A DNA stretch of 63,982 nt, the filler included, from Reticulomyxa filosa (Eukaryota > Protista > Foraminifera), in assembly GCA_000512085.1 (NCBI GenBank). It is 18 parts of 18 records of this genome, joined end to end, with 100 filler letters (N's around TTAATTAATTAA, not from the genome) between each part and the next. Parts side by side here need not be neighbours in the genome. Positions count along the whole stretch, not along the records: positions 23,922 to 29,770 come from ASPP01005413.1; 17 more parts are not named here. The stretch is one strand, 5' to 3'. The notes beneath the pieces are model-generated. The model saw nothing but the letters and a program-made list of their open reading frames with translations. It made no database searches and was not told where the DNA came from. The position numbers and the translations under genes were made by a program. Shown here piece after piece: positions 23,752-29,770 of the stretch. How positions within the stretch are numbered: the first letter of the stretch is position 1; the number at the start of each line of letters is the position of its first letter.

Positions 23752-24676
23752 CGATCCTAATGAGTATATTATACGTGTATATTTCTTTTTGTATCAAAAA
23801 GTAATAATAATAATAATAATANNNNNNNNNNNNNNNNNNNNNNNNNNNNNNNNNNNNNNNNNNNNTTAATTAATTAANNNNNNNNNNNNNNNNNNNNNNN
23901 NNNNNNNNNNNNNNNNNNNNNTTTTTTTTTCCTTATCCAAATAGAAAACAACGTGCTTTTGTTTTGTTTTTGTTTTGGTGGCCAAGCAATATCATTTCTT
24001 ACCTTTTTATTGTTTCGTTTTTTGCCTTTTTCTGAATTTATTCGCTCTGTTTGTTTCTCTAAAATTTGAACGAGAATAATGCATTTTCTGTAAAGCATAA
24101 TAGCCTTTACTTTATTTTTTAGGATATTAAATTTAAATTGAAGTTGTTTTTGTATTTTCTTGGAAAAATACCACAAAAGCGCAACTTCAAACGATAAGGA
24201 TTTGAGTTTGTCATCCTAGGGGCATCACATGATACGCACAGTAATTAGTTCGGATTTGCACTATTACATATTCACCGAAAATTGCCTTAGTGTAATCTTT
24301 GTTTTTTCTAAAATCAATTTTGTTCAATTCAATGTAGTTATTCGTTACGCAGCTGCGGATTGAAATATATTTTCTATTAACTAATTTAAACTTTATAAAA
24401 TTATATTTTGGGAAAAGTGTGCTATATTTTATTATTTTACAGTGATATTCCTTTTTATTAATGTTATTTCCTTTTCATCTACGTTCACAAGAAGTCGTCT
24501 GTACTTTTCATCGACGCGAAGACAACTATATCAATTGATCTAAATAAACTATTTGCGGTTTGCTATAGATAAAGCAATTCAATCAAGAAATTAGTGTATC
24601 CTATAAGCGTCACGTGCTTTTCAAAGAACAAAGGGAGAAGTTCAATATTCAACTAAATATATTGATATTCAAACAG

Positions 24677-27600
24677 ATGTTTCGAAATGAAGGTGAATCA
24701 AACGGAAAAGATGCAGAACAGAAATTACAAAAAGAAGAAGAAAAAGCAGAGATTGGCAAAATTAAACCAGGGATCAATTTGCAAGGCTACTGCACAAATG
24801 GAGATTGTTTGGTATCAAAAGCGAAGCTTCTAGTGTGGGTAAACATTGGATTTTGCGATATTTCGTTTGATTCTAACAAAACCACTTATTATTGTCCAGA
24901 TTGCAGCAAACCGACGGTTACATCAGTTGTAAAGGCAATGTTTTTTAATGTGGAACATTCTATATGTGCAAGTGAGGATTCAATTCCAGTGAAAGATAAT
25001 TATTACCAGTGTATGTATGTGATCAAATCAAATTTATCCTATGAATTAAAAGCCAAAAAAATCAGGCAGCATGCAACAAGCCTGGAAGACTTAATAACAA
25101 GAAGTGAAAATGCAATGACAAGTGTGGAGATTGTAAATCTAGTGGCAGAGTTACAGAAATATTTAATTACGGTGGTAAAACCACCTAAAGTAAAAGATAA
25201 GATGAGATTATTGGAAAAGATTGAATGCGATTATAGAGGAGATTATAATCAAGTATTTGATGTTGGAAGATTCACTATTTTGTGTGATAATGACACCAAA
25301 TTGCAAACAGCAGTGGCAGTGATAAAGAAAGCAGAAAAATTTAATTTGGTTGTATCTGAAGATAAAGATTTTTTTGAAAAGCAATCGAAAACACATCATC
25401 GATTTCACAATATCAAATTGTATGTGCCAAATCACGAGGTTTATATTGAAATGCAAGCGACATTGAAAAATTTTACAACATTAGAAGGATACACGGCTAT
25501 CGAAAACCCCAAATTAAGTCATTTATTTTATGAGCTAATCAGAGCGTGGAAACCAAAGAATTCGGAAGAGGAAGAGTTGAAACAAGCAAGTGATGAAACA
25601 TTAACCAAGATCAATGATATCATTTGTGAGTGGATTGACGATAAGGCAATACAAAAAATGGCAAGTCGATACAAGGGACATTTGGATATTGGAATATTGA
25701 AACCGCCACAGCTATGGAAAAAAACGGAAATTGAAATTGACAATAATCTGTCTTTGAAAATGGCAAAATTTATTTATGAACAACTTTGCAAGTTTACTCC
25801 AGAGAAGGTAAAAGGAAAGGCCACTTATGTGATTTTGTATGAATATTATAAAAATTACATTGTTGGAGATAAGAACCCAGCAAGTTGTGCTGATTTCGCA
25901 TTGTTATTACAAGATTCAAGAAAACAAGAGATGGAAGAAGACATTGCTATATCTCAAGCACTTGAAACATATATCTCATTACAAGCAAATAATTATCCAC
26001 ATGTGGATGGTGACGACAATGAAAAGCAAGAAACATATGATTGCCATCAATATGTTATCGAACGTTTAGAACAAGATGAAAAAAAAAGTGAACAACAAAA
26101 AGGGGTAATGATAATCGAAGGGAAATCAGGATCTGGAAAAAGTATTTTTTGTCGTCATTTGGAAGGAACATTATGGAATAAGTATATGTCTGATTCGAAA
26201 ATGCCCATTCCTTTTTATATTTCTTTCGCAAAAATTTATAACAAACAACATGAAAAAGATATTGTTTTGCAAGCCTTACAAGCTAAAAATATCAGTAAAG
26301 AAATAATTGACGCAATTCGTGAAACAGTATCTTTTGTGTTTATTATGGATGGGTTTGATGAAATTTTTGATTTTTATCGAAAAGATATGAGTAAACCATA
26401 TTTTTGTGATCGTTTTGGTTTGAATCAATGGAATGCAACAGTGATTGTTACTTGTCGAAGCAATGTACTGAGTGAAGAAGACATTAAAAGTTCTTTGATT
26501 GGCATGAATCAAAATGACACCTCGATTGTGTATCTATGGCCATTTACCAAAATGCAAATGTATAGCTATATCGAAAAATTTGCGAAAATAAAATCTAAAA
26601 ACAAAACTGCTAACGAAAATGATTGGACTCCACAACAATACAAAGAAACATTGAATAACTATCCAAATTTACAAAAAATGATAGAAGAACCATTTCTTCT
26701 TCAACTCATTTTAAATGTTTTACCTTTGTTAGTGCAACGATATGGTGTAGAGAGTAGAATTTCAAGAGCACAAATCTATGAAGTATTTAATGATCAGTGG
26801 ATTGATATTCATGTTCAAAACATTATTTCCAAATTATCTGAATTACGAATTCAAATGGACATCAATAAAATTAAAGCAACATTAAAACGATACTGCTTCG
26901 ATTTAGCATTTGATATGTTTCATCAAGGAAGTCAAGTAGCAATTGAGTCAGAATTTCAATATCAAAATTCTAACGAGGCTGTGGGCGTATTAAATTCAAT
27001 GATGGAAAATAAAAGTATTGTGGATGAAAAAATAGAAATAAAACCAATAAGTAGAGTAGTTTCAGTTGCGAAAACAAGAGATGTTTGGGAAAAATACTTC
27101 AATGGTGATAGCGTTGCCAAATATGTATTGAGAAGGACTGGAGACAACAAATACCAATTTTTACATAAATCATGCCAAGAATATTTTGCTGCACAAAAAA
27201 TTGTGCTTGATATCATTTCATGGAAACCTGATGCTAATTTTGATCTTAATAACCAAGAATTTCAGCAACAATTCGAAGCACATGTTCCTAATTTGGCTAT
27301 TAACATCAAATTACTAAATGAAGAGTTGGGCATTATCAAGTTTATTTGTGAACGAGTTCATGACACAAATCCGATATTTGCAAATTTAAAGTCGAGGTTA
27401 TTCCGAATCATTGAAATTTCAGCGATAAATGCCAAAATCAGTATTGCAGCCGCAAATGCAATTACGATACTCAATTCAGCTTGTATTAACATGCACTATC
27501 GGGATTGGTGCAACATAAAAATCCCTCATGCGATCCTCGATGCTGCATTCCTGGAAGGAACAAATTTCCAAAATGCAAACTTAGATCAAGTTAGTTTTTA

Positions 27601-29680
27601 TCAAGCTTTTTTGAACAAAGCAGACTTTACAAATGCATCCATGAACGGAGTTTATTTTGGCGAATATGCTTGTTTGGAAGGACATGCGGATGCTGTAACC
27701 GACGTGAAATTTGCACCAGATGGCTCTAAAATTGTGTCTCGATCATGGGATAGAACCATTCGGTTGTGGGATGTATCATCTGGCACCCAAATTCAATCAT
27801 TGCAAGTAGACAGTGATGTACTTGGTGTACAATTTTCACCTGATGGCTCTAAAATCGTGTCTTGTGCAAAAGATAAAATAATTCGAATATGGGATTTGTC
27901 TTCAAGTCAAGAAATTCAGTTATTTCAAGGCCATTTACATGATATAACCGGAGTACAATTTTCGTCGGATGGTTTGAAAATTGTGTCATGCTCACGAGAT
28001 AAAACGATTAGGTTGTGGGATGTAGCATCTGGAAAGCAATTGCAATTGTTGGAAGGACATTCAGATGGTGTGAGCGGGATACAGTTTTCACGAGATTGTT
28101 CCAAAGTTGTGTCGTGTTCATTAGACAAAACAATTCGAATATGGGATTTGTCGACAATGCGACAGATCCGATTGTTAGAAGGACACTCAGACTCTATCAA
28201 CGCAGTAAAATTATCAGCAACTGGCTCTAAGATTGTATCCTGTTCAGATGATACGACTGTCCGTATTTGGGATTTCTTATCTGGAAAACAATTGCAAGTC
28301 TTGGAGGGACATACAAAATGTGTGAATGCAGCAGAGTTTTCACCAGACAGTTTTAGGATTGTATCTTGTGCCGATGACAGGACAATCCGAATATGGGATG
28401 CATTGTCTGGAAAACAGCTGCAATTATTAGAGGGCCACTTAGGTGGTATAACTGGAGTGCAATTTTTCCCAAATGACTCCAAAATATTGTCATGCTCCTG
28501 GGATAAGACAATTCGAGTATGGGATGTATCATTAACACGTAAAATTCAGTCAATAAAAGGGCATTCCAGTAGTGTATATGAAGTTCAATTTTCACCAGAT
28601 GGCTCAAAAATTGTGTCATGTTCAAGTGATAAAACAGTTCGAATATGGGAAGCTTCATCTGGAAAGCAAATACAAATATTTGAAGGACATTTGAAACGTG
28701 TACACGCAGTAGGATTTTCACCAGATATGTTAAACATTGTATCCTGTTCAGATGACAGAACAATTCGAATTTGGAATGTAATGTCTGGCAAGCAACTTCA
28801 ATTGTTAGAGGGGCATATTGATGACATTGTTGGAGTACAATTTTCTCCAGATGGTTCTAAATTGATGTCATACTCTTTGGACACTACCATACGCATATGG
28901 GATGTGTTATCTGGTCAATTAATCCAATTATTGGGTGGACATTCACGTGCTGTAACTGGAGCACAATTTTCGTCTGATGGTTCTAAAATTGTATCATGTT
29001 CAGGTGACAGAACAATTCGAATATGGGACTTGTCTTTAGGAAAACAAATCCAATTGTTGAAAGGACATTCATTTGGCGTTAGTGGAGTGCAATTTGTACC
29101 GAACGGTTCTAAAGTTATATCGTATTCATGGGACAAAACTATCCGAATATGGGACGCATCGTCTGGACAACAAATTCAATCACTGGAAGGTCATTTACTG
29201 TCTATTAACATAGCATTATTGTCAGCAGACGGATCAAAAATTGTGTCGGGTTCAGATGACAAAACTATTCGAATATGGGATGCGTCAACTGGAAAACAGC
29301 TTCAATTATTAGATGGACACTCTGACGGCGTCACTGTTGTACAATTTTCGCCTGATTGTTCCAAGCTTATTTCATATTCACGAGACAAAACTATTCGAAT
29401 GTGGGATCTATCTTCAGGACAAGAAATTCAATCGTTGGAAGGACACGTCGGTTCTGTATCCGGAATGCAATTTTCTCCAGACGGGTCTATGTTTGTGTCG
29501 TGTTCATATGATCGAACAATTCGGTTGTGGGGCAATGACGACAGTGGTTTAATGAAATGCATTTGGCAAGCAGGAGTCCAAAGTTATGGATTATCTATGA
29601 AAGACAGTGTTTGGAAGAACGCAACCGGGCTGACGCCTCAACAAAAAATGCTTGTGGGGCAACGTGGTGGAAAATTTTGA
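24677..29680 (+). CDS. NLR-like STAND protein: Cys-rich Zn-ribbon + RelA/SpoT-like nucleotidyltransferase + NACHT + pentapeptide repeat + 15 WD40
   Basis: Intronless ORF (first ATG 24677). GINLQGYCTNGDC..CPDC; KVKDKMRLLEK..DYRGD..VFDVGRFTI..HRFHNI..IEMQ..SHLFYE; Walker A GKSGSGKS (26120-26143); Walker B FIMDGFDE; VIVTCR; EPFLL; YQFLHKSCQEYF; A(D/N)F pentapeptides; 15 TIRxW repeats. Confidence 0.92.
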   Translation: MFRNEGESNGKDAEQKLQKEEEKAEIGKIKPGINLQGYCTNGDCLVSKAKLLVWVNIGFCDISFDSNKTTYYCPDCSKPTVTSVVKAMFFNVEHSICASEDSIPVKDNYYQCMYVIKSNLSYELKAKKIRQHATSLEDLITRSENAMTSVEIVNLVAELQKYLITVVKPPKVKDKMRLLEKIECDYRGDYNQVFDVGRFTILCDNDTKLQTAVAVIKKAEKFNLVVSEDKDFFEKQSKTHHRFHNIKLYVPNHEVYIEMQATLKNFTTLEGYTAIENPKLSHLFYELIRAWKPKNSEEEELKQASDETLTKINDIICEWIDDKAIQKMASRYKGHLDIGILKPPQLWKKTEIEIDNNLSLKMAKFIYEQLCKFTPEKVKGKATYVILYEYYKNYIVGDKNPASCADFALLLQDSRKQEMEEDIAISQALETYISLQANNYPHVDGDDNEKQETYDCHQYVIERLEQDEKKSEQQKGVMIIEGKSGSGKSIFCRHLEGTLWNKYMSDSKMPIPFYISFAKIYNKQHEKDIVLQALQAKNISKEIIDAIRETVSFVFIMDGFDEIFDFYRKDMSKPYFCDRFGLNQWNATVIVTCRSNVLSEEDIKSSLIGMNQNDTSIVYLWPFTKMQMYSYIEKFAKIKSKNKTANENDWTPQQYKETLNNYPNLQKMIEEPFLLQLILNVLPLLVQRYGVESRISRAQIYEVFNDQWIDIHVQNIISKLSELRIQMDINKIKATLKRYCFDLAFDMFHQGSQVAIESEFQYQNSNEAVGVLNSMMENKSIVDEKIEIKPISRVVSVAKTRDVWEKYFNGDSVAKYVLRRTGDNKYQFLHKSCQEYFAAQKIVLDIISWKPDANFDLNNQEFQQQFEAHVPNLAINIKLLNEELGIIKFICERVHDTNPIFANLKSRLFRIIEISAINAKISIAAANAITILNSACINMHYRDWCNIKIPHAILDAAFLEGTNFQNANLDQVSFYQAFLNKADFTNASMNGVYFGEYACLEGHADAVTDVKFAPDGSKIVSRSWDRTIRLWDVSSGTQIQSLQVDSDVLGVQFSPDGSKIVSCAKDKIIRIWDLSSSQEIQLFQGHLHDITGVQFSSDGLKIVSCSRDKTIRLWDVASGKQLQLLEGHSDGVSGIQFSRDCSKVVSCSLDKTIRIWDLSTMRQIRLLEGHSDSINAVKLSATGSKIVSCSDDTTVRIWDFLSGKQLQVLEGHTKCVNAAEFSPDSFRIVSCADDRTIRIWDALSGKQLQLLEGHLGGITGVQFFPNDSKILSCSWDKTIRVWDVSLTRKIQSIKGHSSSVYEVQFSPDGSKIVSCSSDKTVRIWEASSGKQIQIFEGHLKRVHAVGFSPDMLNIVSCSDDRTIRIWNVMSGKQLQLLEGHIDDIVGVQFSPDGSKLMSYSLDTTIRIWDVLSGQLIQLLGGHSRAVTGAQFSSDGSKIVSCSGDRTIRIWDLSLGKQIQLLKGHSFGVSGVQFVPNGSKVISYSWDKTIRIWDASSGQQIQSLEGHLLSINIALLSADGSKIVSGSDDKTIRIWDASTGKQLQLLDGHSDGVTVVQFSPDCSKLISYSRDKTIRMWDLSSGQEIQSLEGHVGSVSGMQFSPDGSMFVSCSYDRTIRLWGNDDSGLMKCIWQAGVQSYGLSMKDSVWKNATGLTPQQKMLVGQRGGKF

Positions 29681-29730
29681 TGTTTCCTTAGATCATATGA
29701 TTATTTTTTTGATTGGTGGTTGTTGTTGTA

Positions 29731-29770
29731 CAGTAAATTGCAAAAAACCGCAATATCTAAATGGCACTAT
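29731..29770 (+). mobile_element. Terminus of a TA-flanked CAGT-ended DNA transposon/MITE (family B)
   Basis: TA|CAGTAAATTGCAAAAAACCGCAATATCTAAATGGCA runs into the contig end and matches the reverse complement of 16153-16190. Confidence 0.6.

Follow-up and report, generated by a model that had tools for sequence, protein, structure and literature searches.

Does the foraminiferan Reticulomyxa filosa possess receptors of the NOD-like receptor (NLR) type whose effector is an enzyme of the RelA/SpoT alarmone-synthetase fold? The question is raised by one gene in a 63,982-nucleotide stretch of DNA, hereafter the window, which joins 18 parts of 18 records of the R. filosa assembly GCA_000512085.1; all positions count along the whole window. 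The gene lies in the piece at 23922-29770, which comes from ASPP01005413.1. A sequence-only reading had taken this gene to encode an NLR-like receptor carrying a RelA/SpoT-like effector at its N terminus. The analysis presented here supports that interpretation as regards fold, family, and architecture, and makes the proposed function a well-founded hypothesis.

The piece contains a single long open reading frame (ORF) on the + strand, with a mechanical span of 24614..29680 and a first ATG at 24677. This start codon position matches those of the annotated paralogues P0004, P0007, and P0012. The coding sequence, 24677..29680 (+), had been described as intronless and is indeed uninterrupted: it specifies 1667 amino acids (aa) plus a stop codon, and internal stops are absent from the ORF list. 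From the N to the C terminus, the encoded protein carries a Cys4 all-beta N-domain and a RelA/SpoT-synthetase-fold domain, then a conserved linker that leads to a NACHT domain, and finally a pentapeptide repeat and 15 WD40 units:

24677..29680, + strand: complete single-exon coding sequence (ORF list; paralogues P0007 and P0012 are also single-exon on their own contigs)
24761..25048, + strand: Cys4 all-beta domain, aa 29-124 (AlphaFold2 model; conserved CX4C...CX2C)
25049..25711, + strand: RelA/SpoT-synthetase-fold (Tas1/Apk-like) domain, aa 125-345, 221 aa (AlphaFold2, Foldseek, VIA-align, hhalign, joint profile)
25712..26086, + strand: acidic linker between effector and NACHT, aa 346-470 (kept in paralogues; isoelectric point (pI) 4.78)
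26105..27529, + strand: NACHT NTPase and C-terminal helical region, aa 477-951 (PF05729, 38.4 bits; cut-off 26.7)
26120-26143, + strand: Walker A, GKSGSGKS, aa 482-489 (intact, GxxxxGK[ST])
26339-26362, + strand: Walker B, FIMDGFDE, aa 555-562 (intact, hhhhDGxDE)
27530..27658, + strand: pentapeptide-repeat segment, aa 952-994 (PF00805, 29.5 bits over aa 952-991; cut-off 20.2)
27671..29557, + strand: 15 WD40 units of exactly 42 aa each, aa 999-1627 (Pfam, 15 stretches)

The NACHT domain and its intact Walker A and B motifs, the pentapeptide repeat, and the 15 WD40 units named in the sequence-only reading were all recovered, with Pfam scores above the cut-offs and both motifs located. The protein has the tripartite layout of an NLR, with an N-terminal effector, a central NTPase, and C-terminal repeats, and the effector domain stands, as proposed, on the N-terminal side of a NACHT-pentapeptide-WD40 protein of the signal transduction ATPases with numerous domains (STAND) class. 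The gene is intact and is predicted to encode a STAND/NLR-type receptor of R. filosa or of a very close relative.

Fold and relatives of the effector domain

The Pfam family for the RelA/SpoT fold, PF04607 (RelA_SpoT), matched the isolated domain at 21.6 bits (E = 2.7e-4) and its N-terminal half at 18.0 bits, both below the gathering threshold of 27 bits. NCBIfam and PADLOC scans returned no match for the domain. The fold assignment therefore rests on structural and profile evidence, which is far above chance. Specifically, AlphaFold2 modelled aa 125-345, using an alignment of 44 paralogous domains, with a predicted local distance difference test score (pLDDT) of 88.7 and a predicted template modelling score of 0.82. 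In a Foldseek search of the PDB with this model, the top 50 matches were RelA/SpoT synthetases without exception (50/50). Tas1 ranked first (E = 6.8e-8) and was followed by RelP, RelQ, Rel, SpoT, and CapRel. Structural alignment using VIA-align gave Z = 13.4 for SAS1 (162 residues, 3.3 Å) and Z = 12.6 for Tas1 (170 residues), the small alarmone synthetases (SAS) and Tas1 together spanning 13.4-12.1. Other nucleotidyltransferases, namely Cid1, URT1, and Pol mu, reached Z ≤ 8.4.

Sequence comparison led to the same family. Tas1, a type VI (p)ppApp synthetase toxin, was the only clear match when the single sequence was compared with the PDB using phmmer (E = 0.008). A profile built from the 44 foraminiferal domains alone brought no gain (E = 0.005) because these sequences are too alike, and distant relatives had to be added. 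Relatives beyond the foraminiferal copies, at 25-35% identity, came from a HMMER search against 1.84 billion representative proteins. PF04607 matches many of these distant relatives and exceeds its threshold in two cases (40.6 and 30 bits), and several bear the polymorphic-toxin carrier domains eCIS_core, Ntox3, or Phage_Mu_F. Alignment of the 44 foraminiferal domains to 14 distant relatives using hhalign scored 99.7%, with E = 2.8e-25 over 156 columns; these 14 are mostly bacterial and occur in toxin contexts. The joint profile of both groups matched, in the PDB, Tas1 (1.1e-20), YwaC (1.1e-9), RelSeq (8.4e-6), and YjbM (1.2e-4), and its alignment places the Asp of the syn2 motif and the Glu of syn4 in the same columns as those of RelSeq and YwaC. 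Foldseek on the AlphaFold2 model, the PDB profile search, and hhalign thus agree on the RelA/SpoT fold that had been proposed from motifs, and they point to the toxic SAS/Tas1 type.

The best PDB match by sequence, profile, and Foldseek is Tas1 (Apk1) of Pseudomonas aeruginosa (6OX6), which forms, with the Apk2 MuF-toxin domains, a group of (p)ppApp synthetase toxins. The R. filosa domain shares with Tas1/Apk the motifs K-x3-R-x2-[EQ]-K, DY-x-GD, D-x-x-R-x-T, E-x-Q, and H-x-x-Y-E. It differs in having Phe for Gly in syn3 and A-T for Y-H or V-N in syn4, and overall identity is 18-21%. The settings also differ: Tas1/Apk domains form the C terminus of secreted bacterial toxins that are paired with immunity proteins, whereas the R. 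filosa domain lies towards the N terminus of a NACHT-WD40 protein from a eukaryote. The best structural alignments were to SAS1/RelQ (5DED) and SAS2/RelP (6EWZ, 6FGK), with Z = 13.4-12.2 over ~160 residues at 3.3-3.9 Å. These (p)ppGpp synthetases have the catalytic Asp and Glu columns in common with the R. filosa domain, at a sequence identity of 12-16%. Their motifs are D-x-x-G-x-R, G-Y-x-S-x-H, and E-x-Q-I-R-T, whereas the R. filosa domain has, in syn2, Arg at +3 and Thr at +5, Asn for His in syn3, and A-T in syn4.

A further fold match is CapRel SJ46 (7ZTB, 9ERV; Z = 11.2 and 10.4), a fused toxin-antitoxin tRNA pyrophosphokinase of anti-phage defence. The R. filosa protein resembles CapRel in its toxic SAS fold, in a covalently attached adjacent regulatory domain, and, if the role predicted for it is correct, in serving as the output of an immune sensor. 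Unlike the R. filosa protein, CapRel is regulated by a C-terminal pseudo-zinc-finger and has no STAND NTPase, and the PDB searches found no sequence match between CapRel and the R. filosa domain. For the latter, tRNA is not indicated as the target.

Some matches were discarded. Two proteins from the representative search, P0107 and P0120, were rejected as relatives, being repeat proteins without a RelA/SpoT homologue (RSH) domain. The fungal Pfam family DUF3294 matched aa 267-333 (25475-25675) at 21.0 bits in one cut (cut-off 20.6) and at 17.8 bits in another; this match, over the C-terminal helices of the SAS fold, is probably noise. Separately, the bacterial relatives P0103 (residues 300-506) and P0106 (residues 860-1050) had weak NCBIfam matches (E = 1e-2 to 1e-3) to the model of the XopAD/skwp type III effector, at its C-terminal end, and to PRK09169 giant proteins. 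This hints that such effectors end in a related RSH-like domain.

Catalytic motifs and predicted product

Five RelA/SpoT motifs had been reported to occur in order within 25172-25549. They were found, in that order, at nt 25187-25534, and the syn3-like motif lies among them:

25187..25219, + strand: syn1-like K171-x-K173-x3-R177-x2-E180-K181 (KVKDKMRLLEK, aa 171-181); aligns to Tas1 IKSRERAMQKI
aa 185-189, between syn1 and syn2: DYRGD
25256..25276, + strand: syn2, F-D195-V-G-R198-F-T200 (D-V-G-R at aa 195-198; putative Mg-binding Asp; R-x-T); D195 aligns with RelSeq FDLIAIR and YwaC HDIAGVR
25394..25411, + strand: syn3-like H-H241-R242-F-H244-N245; N245 shares a column with the Asn of Tas1 G-V-N
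25448..25465, + strand: syn4, E258-M-Q260-A-T-L (E-M-Q at aa 258-260; catalytic Glu by alignment); aligns with the Glu of RelSeq and YwaC E-I-Q-I-R-T
25517..25534, + strand: syn5-like S-H282-L-F-Y285-E286 (H-L-F-Y-E at aa 282-286); aligns to Tas1 GHKYYE

In RSH enzymes, syn1 binds the ATP phosphates and syn3 forms the acceptor-base site. We take D195 and E258 to correspond to D264 and E323 of RelSeq, which Hogg et al. reportedly identified in 2004 as the catalytic pair of the synthetase.

The conservation of these motifs was counted in 44 full-length paralogous copies of the domain. In syn1, K173 was present in 44/44 copies and R177, E180, and K181 in 43/44 each. All copies retained D195, G197, R198, and T200 of syn2 as well as E258, Q260, and T262 of syn4. 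The syn3-like motif kept R242 and H244 in 44/44 copies and N245 in 41/44, and the syn5-like motif kept Y285 in 44/44, H282 in 43/44, and E286 in 42/44; R289 was also found in 43/44. The catalytic Asp and Glu on which the sequence-only reading had made its case depend are thus invariant in these copies, and the paralogues number at least 57. In a broader alignment of 24 sequences, E258 was the sole fully invariant column, while K173, K181, D195, R198, R242, Q260, H282, Y285, and R289 were kept in at least 90%. Judged from these alignments, the domain retains each residue that is near-invariant across the Tas1/Apk branch, including the Lys and Arg of the putative ATP site.

As invariance among paralogues is not fully independent evidence, codons were compared with those of four R. 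filosa paralogues. The numbers of non-synonymous substitutions per site (dN) were as follows:

RSH-like domain: 0.07-0.11 (lowest in the protein)
NACHT region: 0.17-0.20
Cys4 N-domain: 0.19-0.24
WD40 repeats: 0.31-0.38 (highest in the protein)

For the RSH-like domain, the ratio to synonymous substitutions (dN/dS) was ~0.05-0.07, values that are rough given saturated dS. The effector domain is under the strongest purifying selection in the protein.

We next considered what the enzyme might make. By its sequence relationships, the domain is placed in the Tas1/Apk branch, that is, among the toxins that synthesize (p)ppApp and belong to polymorphic-toxin and secretion systems of bacteria. Adenosine and guanosine 3'-pyrophosphokinases are distinguished by signatures in syn2, syn3, and syn4 (PMC12226406), and the R. 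filosa domain compares with these signatures as follows:

syn2: adenosine type R-Y-T; guanosine (RSH) type A-V-R; R. filosa R-F-T, the adenosine type
syn3: adenosine type G-x-N; guanosine (RSH) type S-x-H; R. filosa F243-H-N245, Asn kept and Phe for Gly
syn4: adenosine type Y-H; guanosine (RSH) type I-R; R. filosa A261-T262, neither type

The two residues after the E-x-Q of syn4 are V-N in Tas1 itself and L-H in most of the distant relatives. Since syn3 and syn4 of the R. filosa domain fit neither signature, the product is not readable from the sequence. A gene neighbourhood and the charge of the domain add to the comparison. On a metagenomic contig (L007:3482-5892), an 80-aa ORF and then a 202-aa HD_4 hydrolase (87.9 bits) lie downstream of the gene for the bacterial relative P0103 (506 aa). 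This order matches apk2-iapK-aph1, in which a toxin, an immunity protein, and a (p)ppApp hydrolase follow one another (PMC12226406). The P0103 locus is flanked by transposase fragments and an AAA-WHD gene. The RSH-like domain of the R. filosa protein has a pI of 7.8, nearly neutral, with no surplus of basic residues; this gives no sign of a strongly basic tRNA-binding surface, which is weak evidence. Based on the placement with Tas1/Apk, the syn signatures, the P0103 locus, and the pI, we rank the candidate activities, from most to least likely, as (p)ppApp synthesis with consumption of ATP, (p)ppGpp synthesis, and tRNA pyrophosphorylation.

Receptor architecture, paralogues, and known counterparts

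The 15 WD40 units have a mean pairwise identity of 54%, and their variation clusters at unit positions 6-8, 10-11, and 26. At the DNA level, the array registers as a tandem repeat over part of its length only, with 66% matches. The NACHT, pentapeptide, and WD40 regions together form a chassis that is shared more widely. Relatives with this chassis (P0131-P0159) are 26-28% identical over the NACHT region (E = 1e-60 to 1e-25) and include many from Mortierellomycota (Linnemannia, Mortierella), 'pentapeptide repeats-containing' proteins of Hexamita inflata, and bacteria such as Candidatus Magnetomorum. These proteins have the same central and C-terminal parts as the R. filosa protein but other N-terminal domains, a TIR domain in one case (P0159), and PF04607 is listed for none of them.

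The family is large within R. filosa. At least 57 of its proteins match the N-terminal 470 residues, at 47-81% identity, and the NACHT region is common to ~60. The present gene, P0007, and P0012 are single-exon genes. P0004 and P0005 have short introns, as their gene spans (L001:3001-8171 and L002:3001-8379) exceed the coding length by ~100 and ~285 nt, respectively. In P0001 (RFI_08856), the Cys4 and RSH module occurs twice in tandem, at aa 25-339 and 392-721, before the NACHT domain; this is the sole paralogue with a precomputed PF04607 RelA_SpoT match. Weaker relatives from metagenomes, P0070 (51% identity) and P0089 (40%), show that the module also occurs outside the sequenced strain. On another metagenomic contig (L005:508-3222), a RelA_SpoT-TPR protein (P0113, 40.6 bits) is encoded 58 nt upstream of an Ank-NACHT ORF (NACHT, 37 bits). 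This arrangement looks like a second, independent pairing of the RSH branch with a NACHT protein.

The source of the gene was considered as well. In agreement with the assigned organism, all close matches of the protein are from R. filosa. No R. filosa protein identical to it was among the matches, so the copy would be either an unannotated R. filosa gene or a gene of a close relative. Bacterial contamination was rejected on the basis of the G+C content of ~30-40%, the location of all close relatives on R. filosa contigs, and the introns in some paralogues. The G+C content is ~0.29 upstream of the gene and 0.30-0.42 inside it. The piece at 23922-29770 contains no second ORF of note and no immunity gene, and a tRNA scan of it found no tRNA gene.

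The sequence-only reading had noted that RelA_SpoT is a rare effector of fungal NLRs, which agrees with the literature: in 2014, it was listed as a rare N-terminal domain of these proteins, at <1% of annotated N-termini (PMC4986451). In Gaeumannomyces graminis, for example, RELA_SPOT-NACHT-WD40 proteins have been reported (Dyrka et al. 2014, PMC4986451), and the effector was still treated as uncharacterised in a 2023 review (PMC10197012). RelA-type domains are also occasional effectors in bacterial NTP-dependent conflict systems (PMC7159879). Compared by architecture, the fungal RelA_SpoT NLRs have the same domain order as the R. filosa protein, namely RelA_SpoT, NACHT, and WD40. The R. filosa protein thus fits the fungal type, in which RelA_SpoT stands N-terminal to NACHT or NB-ARC and the repeats are WD40, ANK, or TPR, and in both cases the domain is treated as an enzymatic NLR effector. 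The two differ in lineage, Ascomycota as against Rhizaria, and in abundance, <1% of annotated N-termini in fungi as against at least 57 copies in R. filosa. Two elements are additional in the foraminiferal proteins: a Cys4 beta domain ahead of the effector and a pentapeptide segment that separates NACHT from WD40. A whole-library phmmer search returned no recognisable fungal NLR among its matches. The RelA_SpoT-NACHT-WD40 architecture is already published for fungi, and what is new here is the lineage, the expansion, and the toxin-like affinity. In the literature searched in full text, no paper joined Reticulomyxa with NACHT, and no NLR-type (NACHT) proteins were described in Rhizaria. Distinctive of the present protein are its clear Tas1/Apk affinity, an unrecognised Cys4 domain in front of the effector, and a pentapeptide spacer between NACHT and WD40.

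The domain in front of the effector had been called a Zn-ribbon. The conserved Cys set implied by that name was confirmed, as CX4C...CX2C: across 49 sequences, C39, C44, and C76 are invariant and C73 is almost so. The small ribbon was not. AlphaFold2 modelled the N-domain as strands only, with a pLDDT of ~97 over aa 30-129, and the domain had no match in the PDB, where Foldseek E values exceeded 0.18 and the best VIA-align score, Z = 5.9, was at the cupin/beta-sandwich background. Because the model is an all-beta domain of ~100 aa with background matches only, the label was dropped in favour of a Cys4 beta domain of no recognised family. This domain is found upstream of the RSH domain in paralogues and in metagenomic relatives, and it probably serves the effector module as a regulatory or docking element. 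A complex prediction for the Cys4 and RSH domains scored 0.00, which is uninformative on a cis-regulatory contact either way. In the ESM Atlas, structural look-alikes of the Cys4 domain (TM 0.60, 96-105 residues) occur in rotifer and ciliate proteins. Among the look-alike clusters, one has a NAD-arginine ADP-ribosyltransferase domain and another has ubiquitin-like domains. As a lead only, the modelled similarity suggests that enzymatic effector domains may have a mobile partner in the Cys4 domain. The linker, aa 346-470, matched no Pfam family.

Proposed mechanism and alternatives

We favour, with a probability of roughly 0.6, an NLR in which ligand-driven oligomerization of the NACHT domain activates a Tas1/Apk-like pyrophosphokinase, which would drain ATP or bring translation to a halt. 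In this mechanism, the 15-unit WD40 region, perhaps with the pentapeptide segment, would act as the sensor. The NACHT NTPase would act as a nucleotide-dependent switch that oligomerizes on activation, as expected from its family, and the N-terminal RelA/SpoT-fold domain would be the output, activated by proximity. Going by the nearest relatives, the activated domain would most likely use ATP to pyrophosphorylate an adenine nucleotide at its 3'-OH; a guanine nucleotide or the 3' end of a tRNA would be the alternative acceptor. The consequence would be rapid consumption of ATP and the shutdown or death of the affected part of the cell. A conflict-type family is supported by the number of paralogues, the variable WD40 surface, the recurrence of the effector in fungal NLRs, and the NACHT neighbour of P0113. 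By analogy, the candidate roles are immunity, allorecognition in the syncytial network, and the handling of bacterial prey.

Several observations weigh against this reading. By itself, the R. filosa sequence falls under the Pfam cut-off for RelA_SpoT. The deviation of syn3 and syn4 from both characterised signatures, as judged from the alignment, applies to the product, and swapping these motifs failed to switch specificity (PMC12226406). The paralogues are ~80% identical in the RSH domain, so the invariance of the residues partly reflects shared recent ancestry. Saturation of dS (1 or more) makes the dN/dS values rough, while the ranking of the regions is clear. Near-identical repeats are typical of fungal HET-E-type NLR genes, and the WD40 units described here, being ~54% identical, are unlike them. 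Finally, the role in immunity or allorecognition is assigned by analogy only.

The alternatives differ in what the RSH-like domain would do. In one, the receptor would be a signalling synthetase that makes (p)ppGpp or another 3'-pyrophosphorylated second messenger without depleting ATP, a messenger that downstream proteins would read or that would be directed at bacterial prey or symbionts. SAS1 and SAS2, which make (p)ppGpp, have Z scores (13.4-12.9) equal to or slightly above that of Tas1 (12.6), guanine acceptors are preferred by SaEAS, an exported relative of Tas1 (PMC12691689), and manipulation of bacterial alarmone signalling has been proposed for fungal NLRs (PMC4986451). Sequence similarity is nevertheless clearly highest to Tas1 and to relatives in toxin contexts, syn2 is of the adenosine-kinase type R-x-T, and Asn stands where the guanine-recognising S-x-H has its His. 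We consider a signalling synthetase unlikely; we also know of no (p)ppGpp receptor in the foraminiferal lineage. Slightly less likely still is a local stop of translation through pyrophosphorylation of the tRNA 3'-CCA end, as by CapRel, FaRel2, and PhRel2. CapRel structures are among the fold matches, and the mechanism is used by toxic SAS enzymes in anti-phage defence (PMC11559606). Against this, the PDB sequence searches matched neither CapRel nor FaRel2, the near-neutral pI without an excess of basic residues offers weak evidence, and the nearest relatives lie in Apk-like toxin loci.

A third alternative, about as doubtful as tRNA modification, is that the fold is kept while catalysis is lost. 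The domain would then be a nucleotide-binding or oligomerization module, and the family may not be immune at all: it could, for example, be a lineage-specific signalling system or scaffold, or have been inflated by repeated duplication. Consistent with this, syn3 and syn4 depart from those of all characterised enzymes, STAND conflict systems often contain enzyme domains that are inactive (PMC7159879), and the R. filosa assembly is fragmented, with many partial paralogues. The conservation of the domain argues the other way: the residues near-invariant across the branch are kept in 44/44 or 43/44 copies, the strongest purifying selection of the protein falls on this domain, and an adaptor needs no joint Mg-binding Asp, catalytic Glu, and ATP-binding Lys and Arg. 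The pyrophosphokinase-effector NLR is thus the reading that we prefer. A more specific form of it, which we regard as possible and tentative, would make a (p)ppApp synthetase of bacterial-toxin type the executioner of more than 50 receptors of differing WD40 specificity; activation of any one of them would drain ATP locally and so seal off the infected or non-self part of the giant multinucleate network, with the Cys4 domain as a cis-acting regulator.

Eukaryotic NLRs with RelA_SpoT domains have been on record since 2014, and the activity of these domains has never been explained. Among eukaryotic relatives of the Tas1/Apk (p)ppApp toxins known so far, the R. filosa domain is the nearest, as far as sequence comparison indicates. 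As a clean, highly conserved, single-exon domain of 221 aa, it makes killing or signalling by a eukaryotic NLR via alarmone-type nucleotides directly testable. The finding extends a theme set by TIR NADases and PNP_UDP ATP nucleosidases, in which nucleotide-destroying effectors are common to bacterial conflict systems and eukaryotic NLRs, and it points to a large NLR-like expansion in Rhizaria. If the more specific, executioner form of the mechanism is correct, these receptors would represent the first (p)ppApp-based cell-autonomous defence in eukaryotes.

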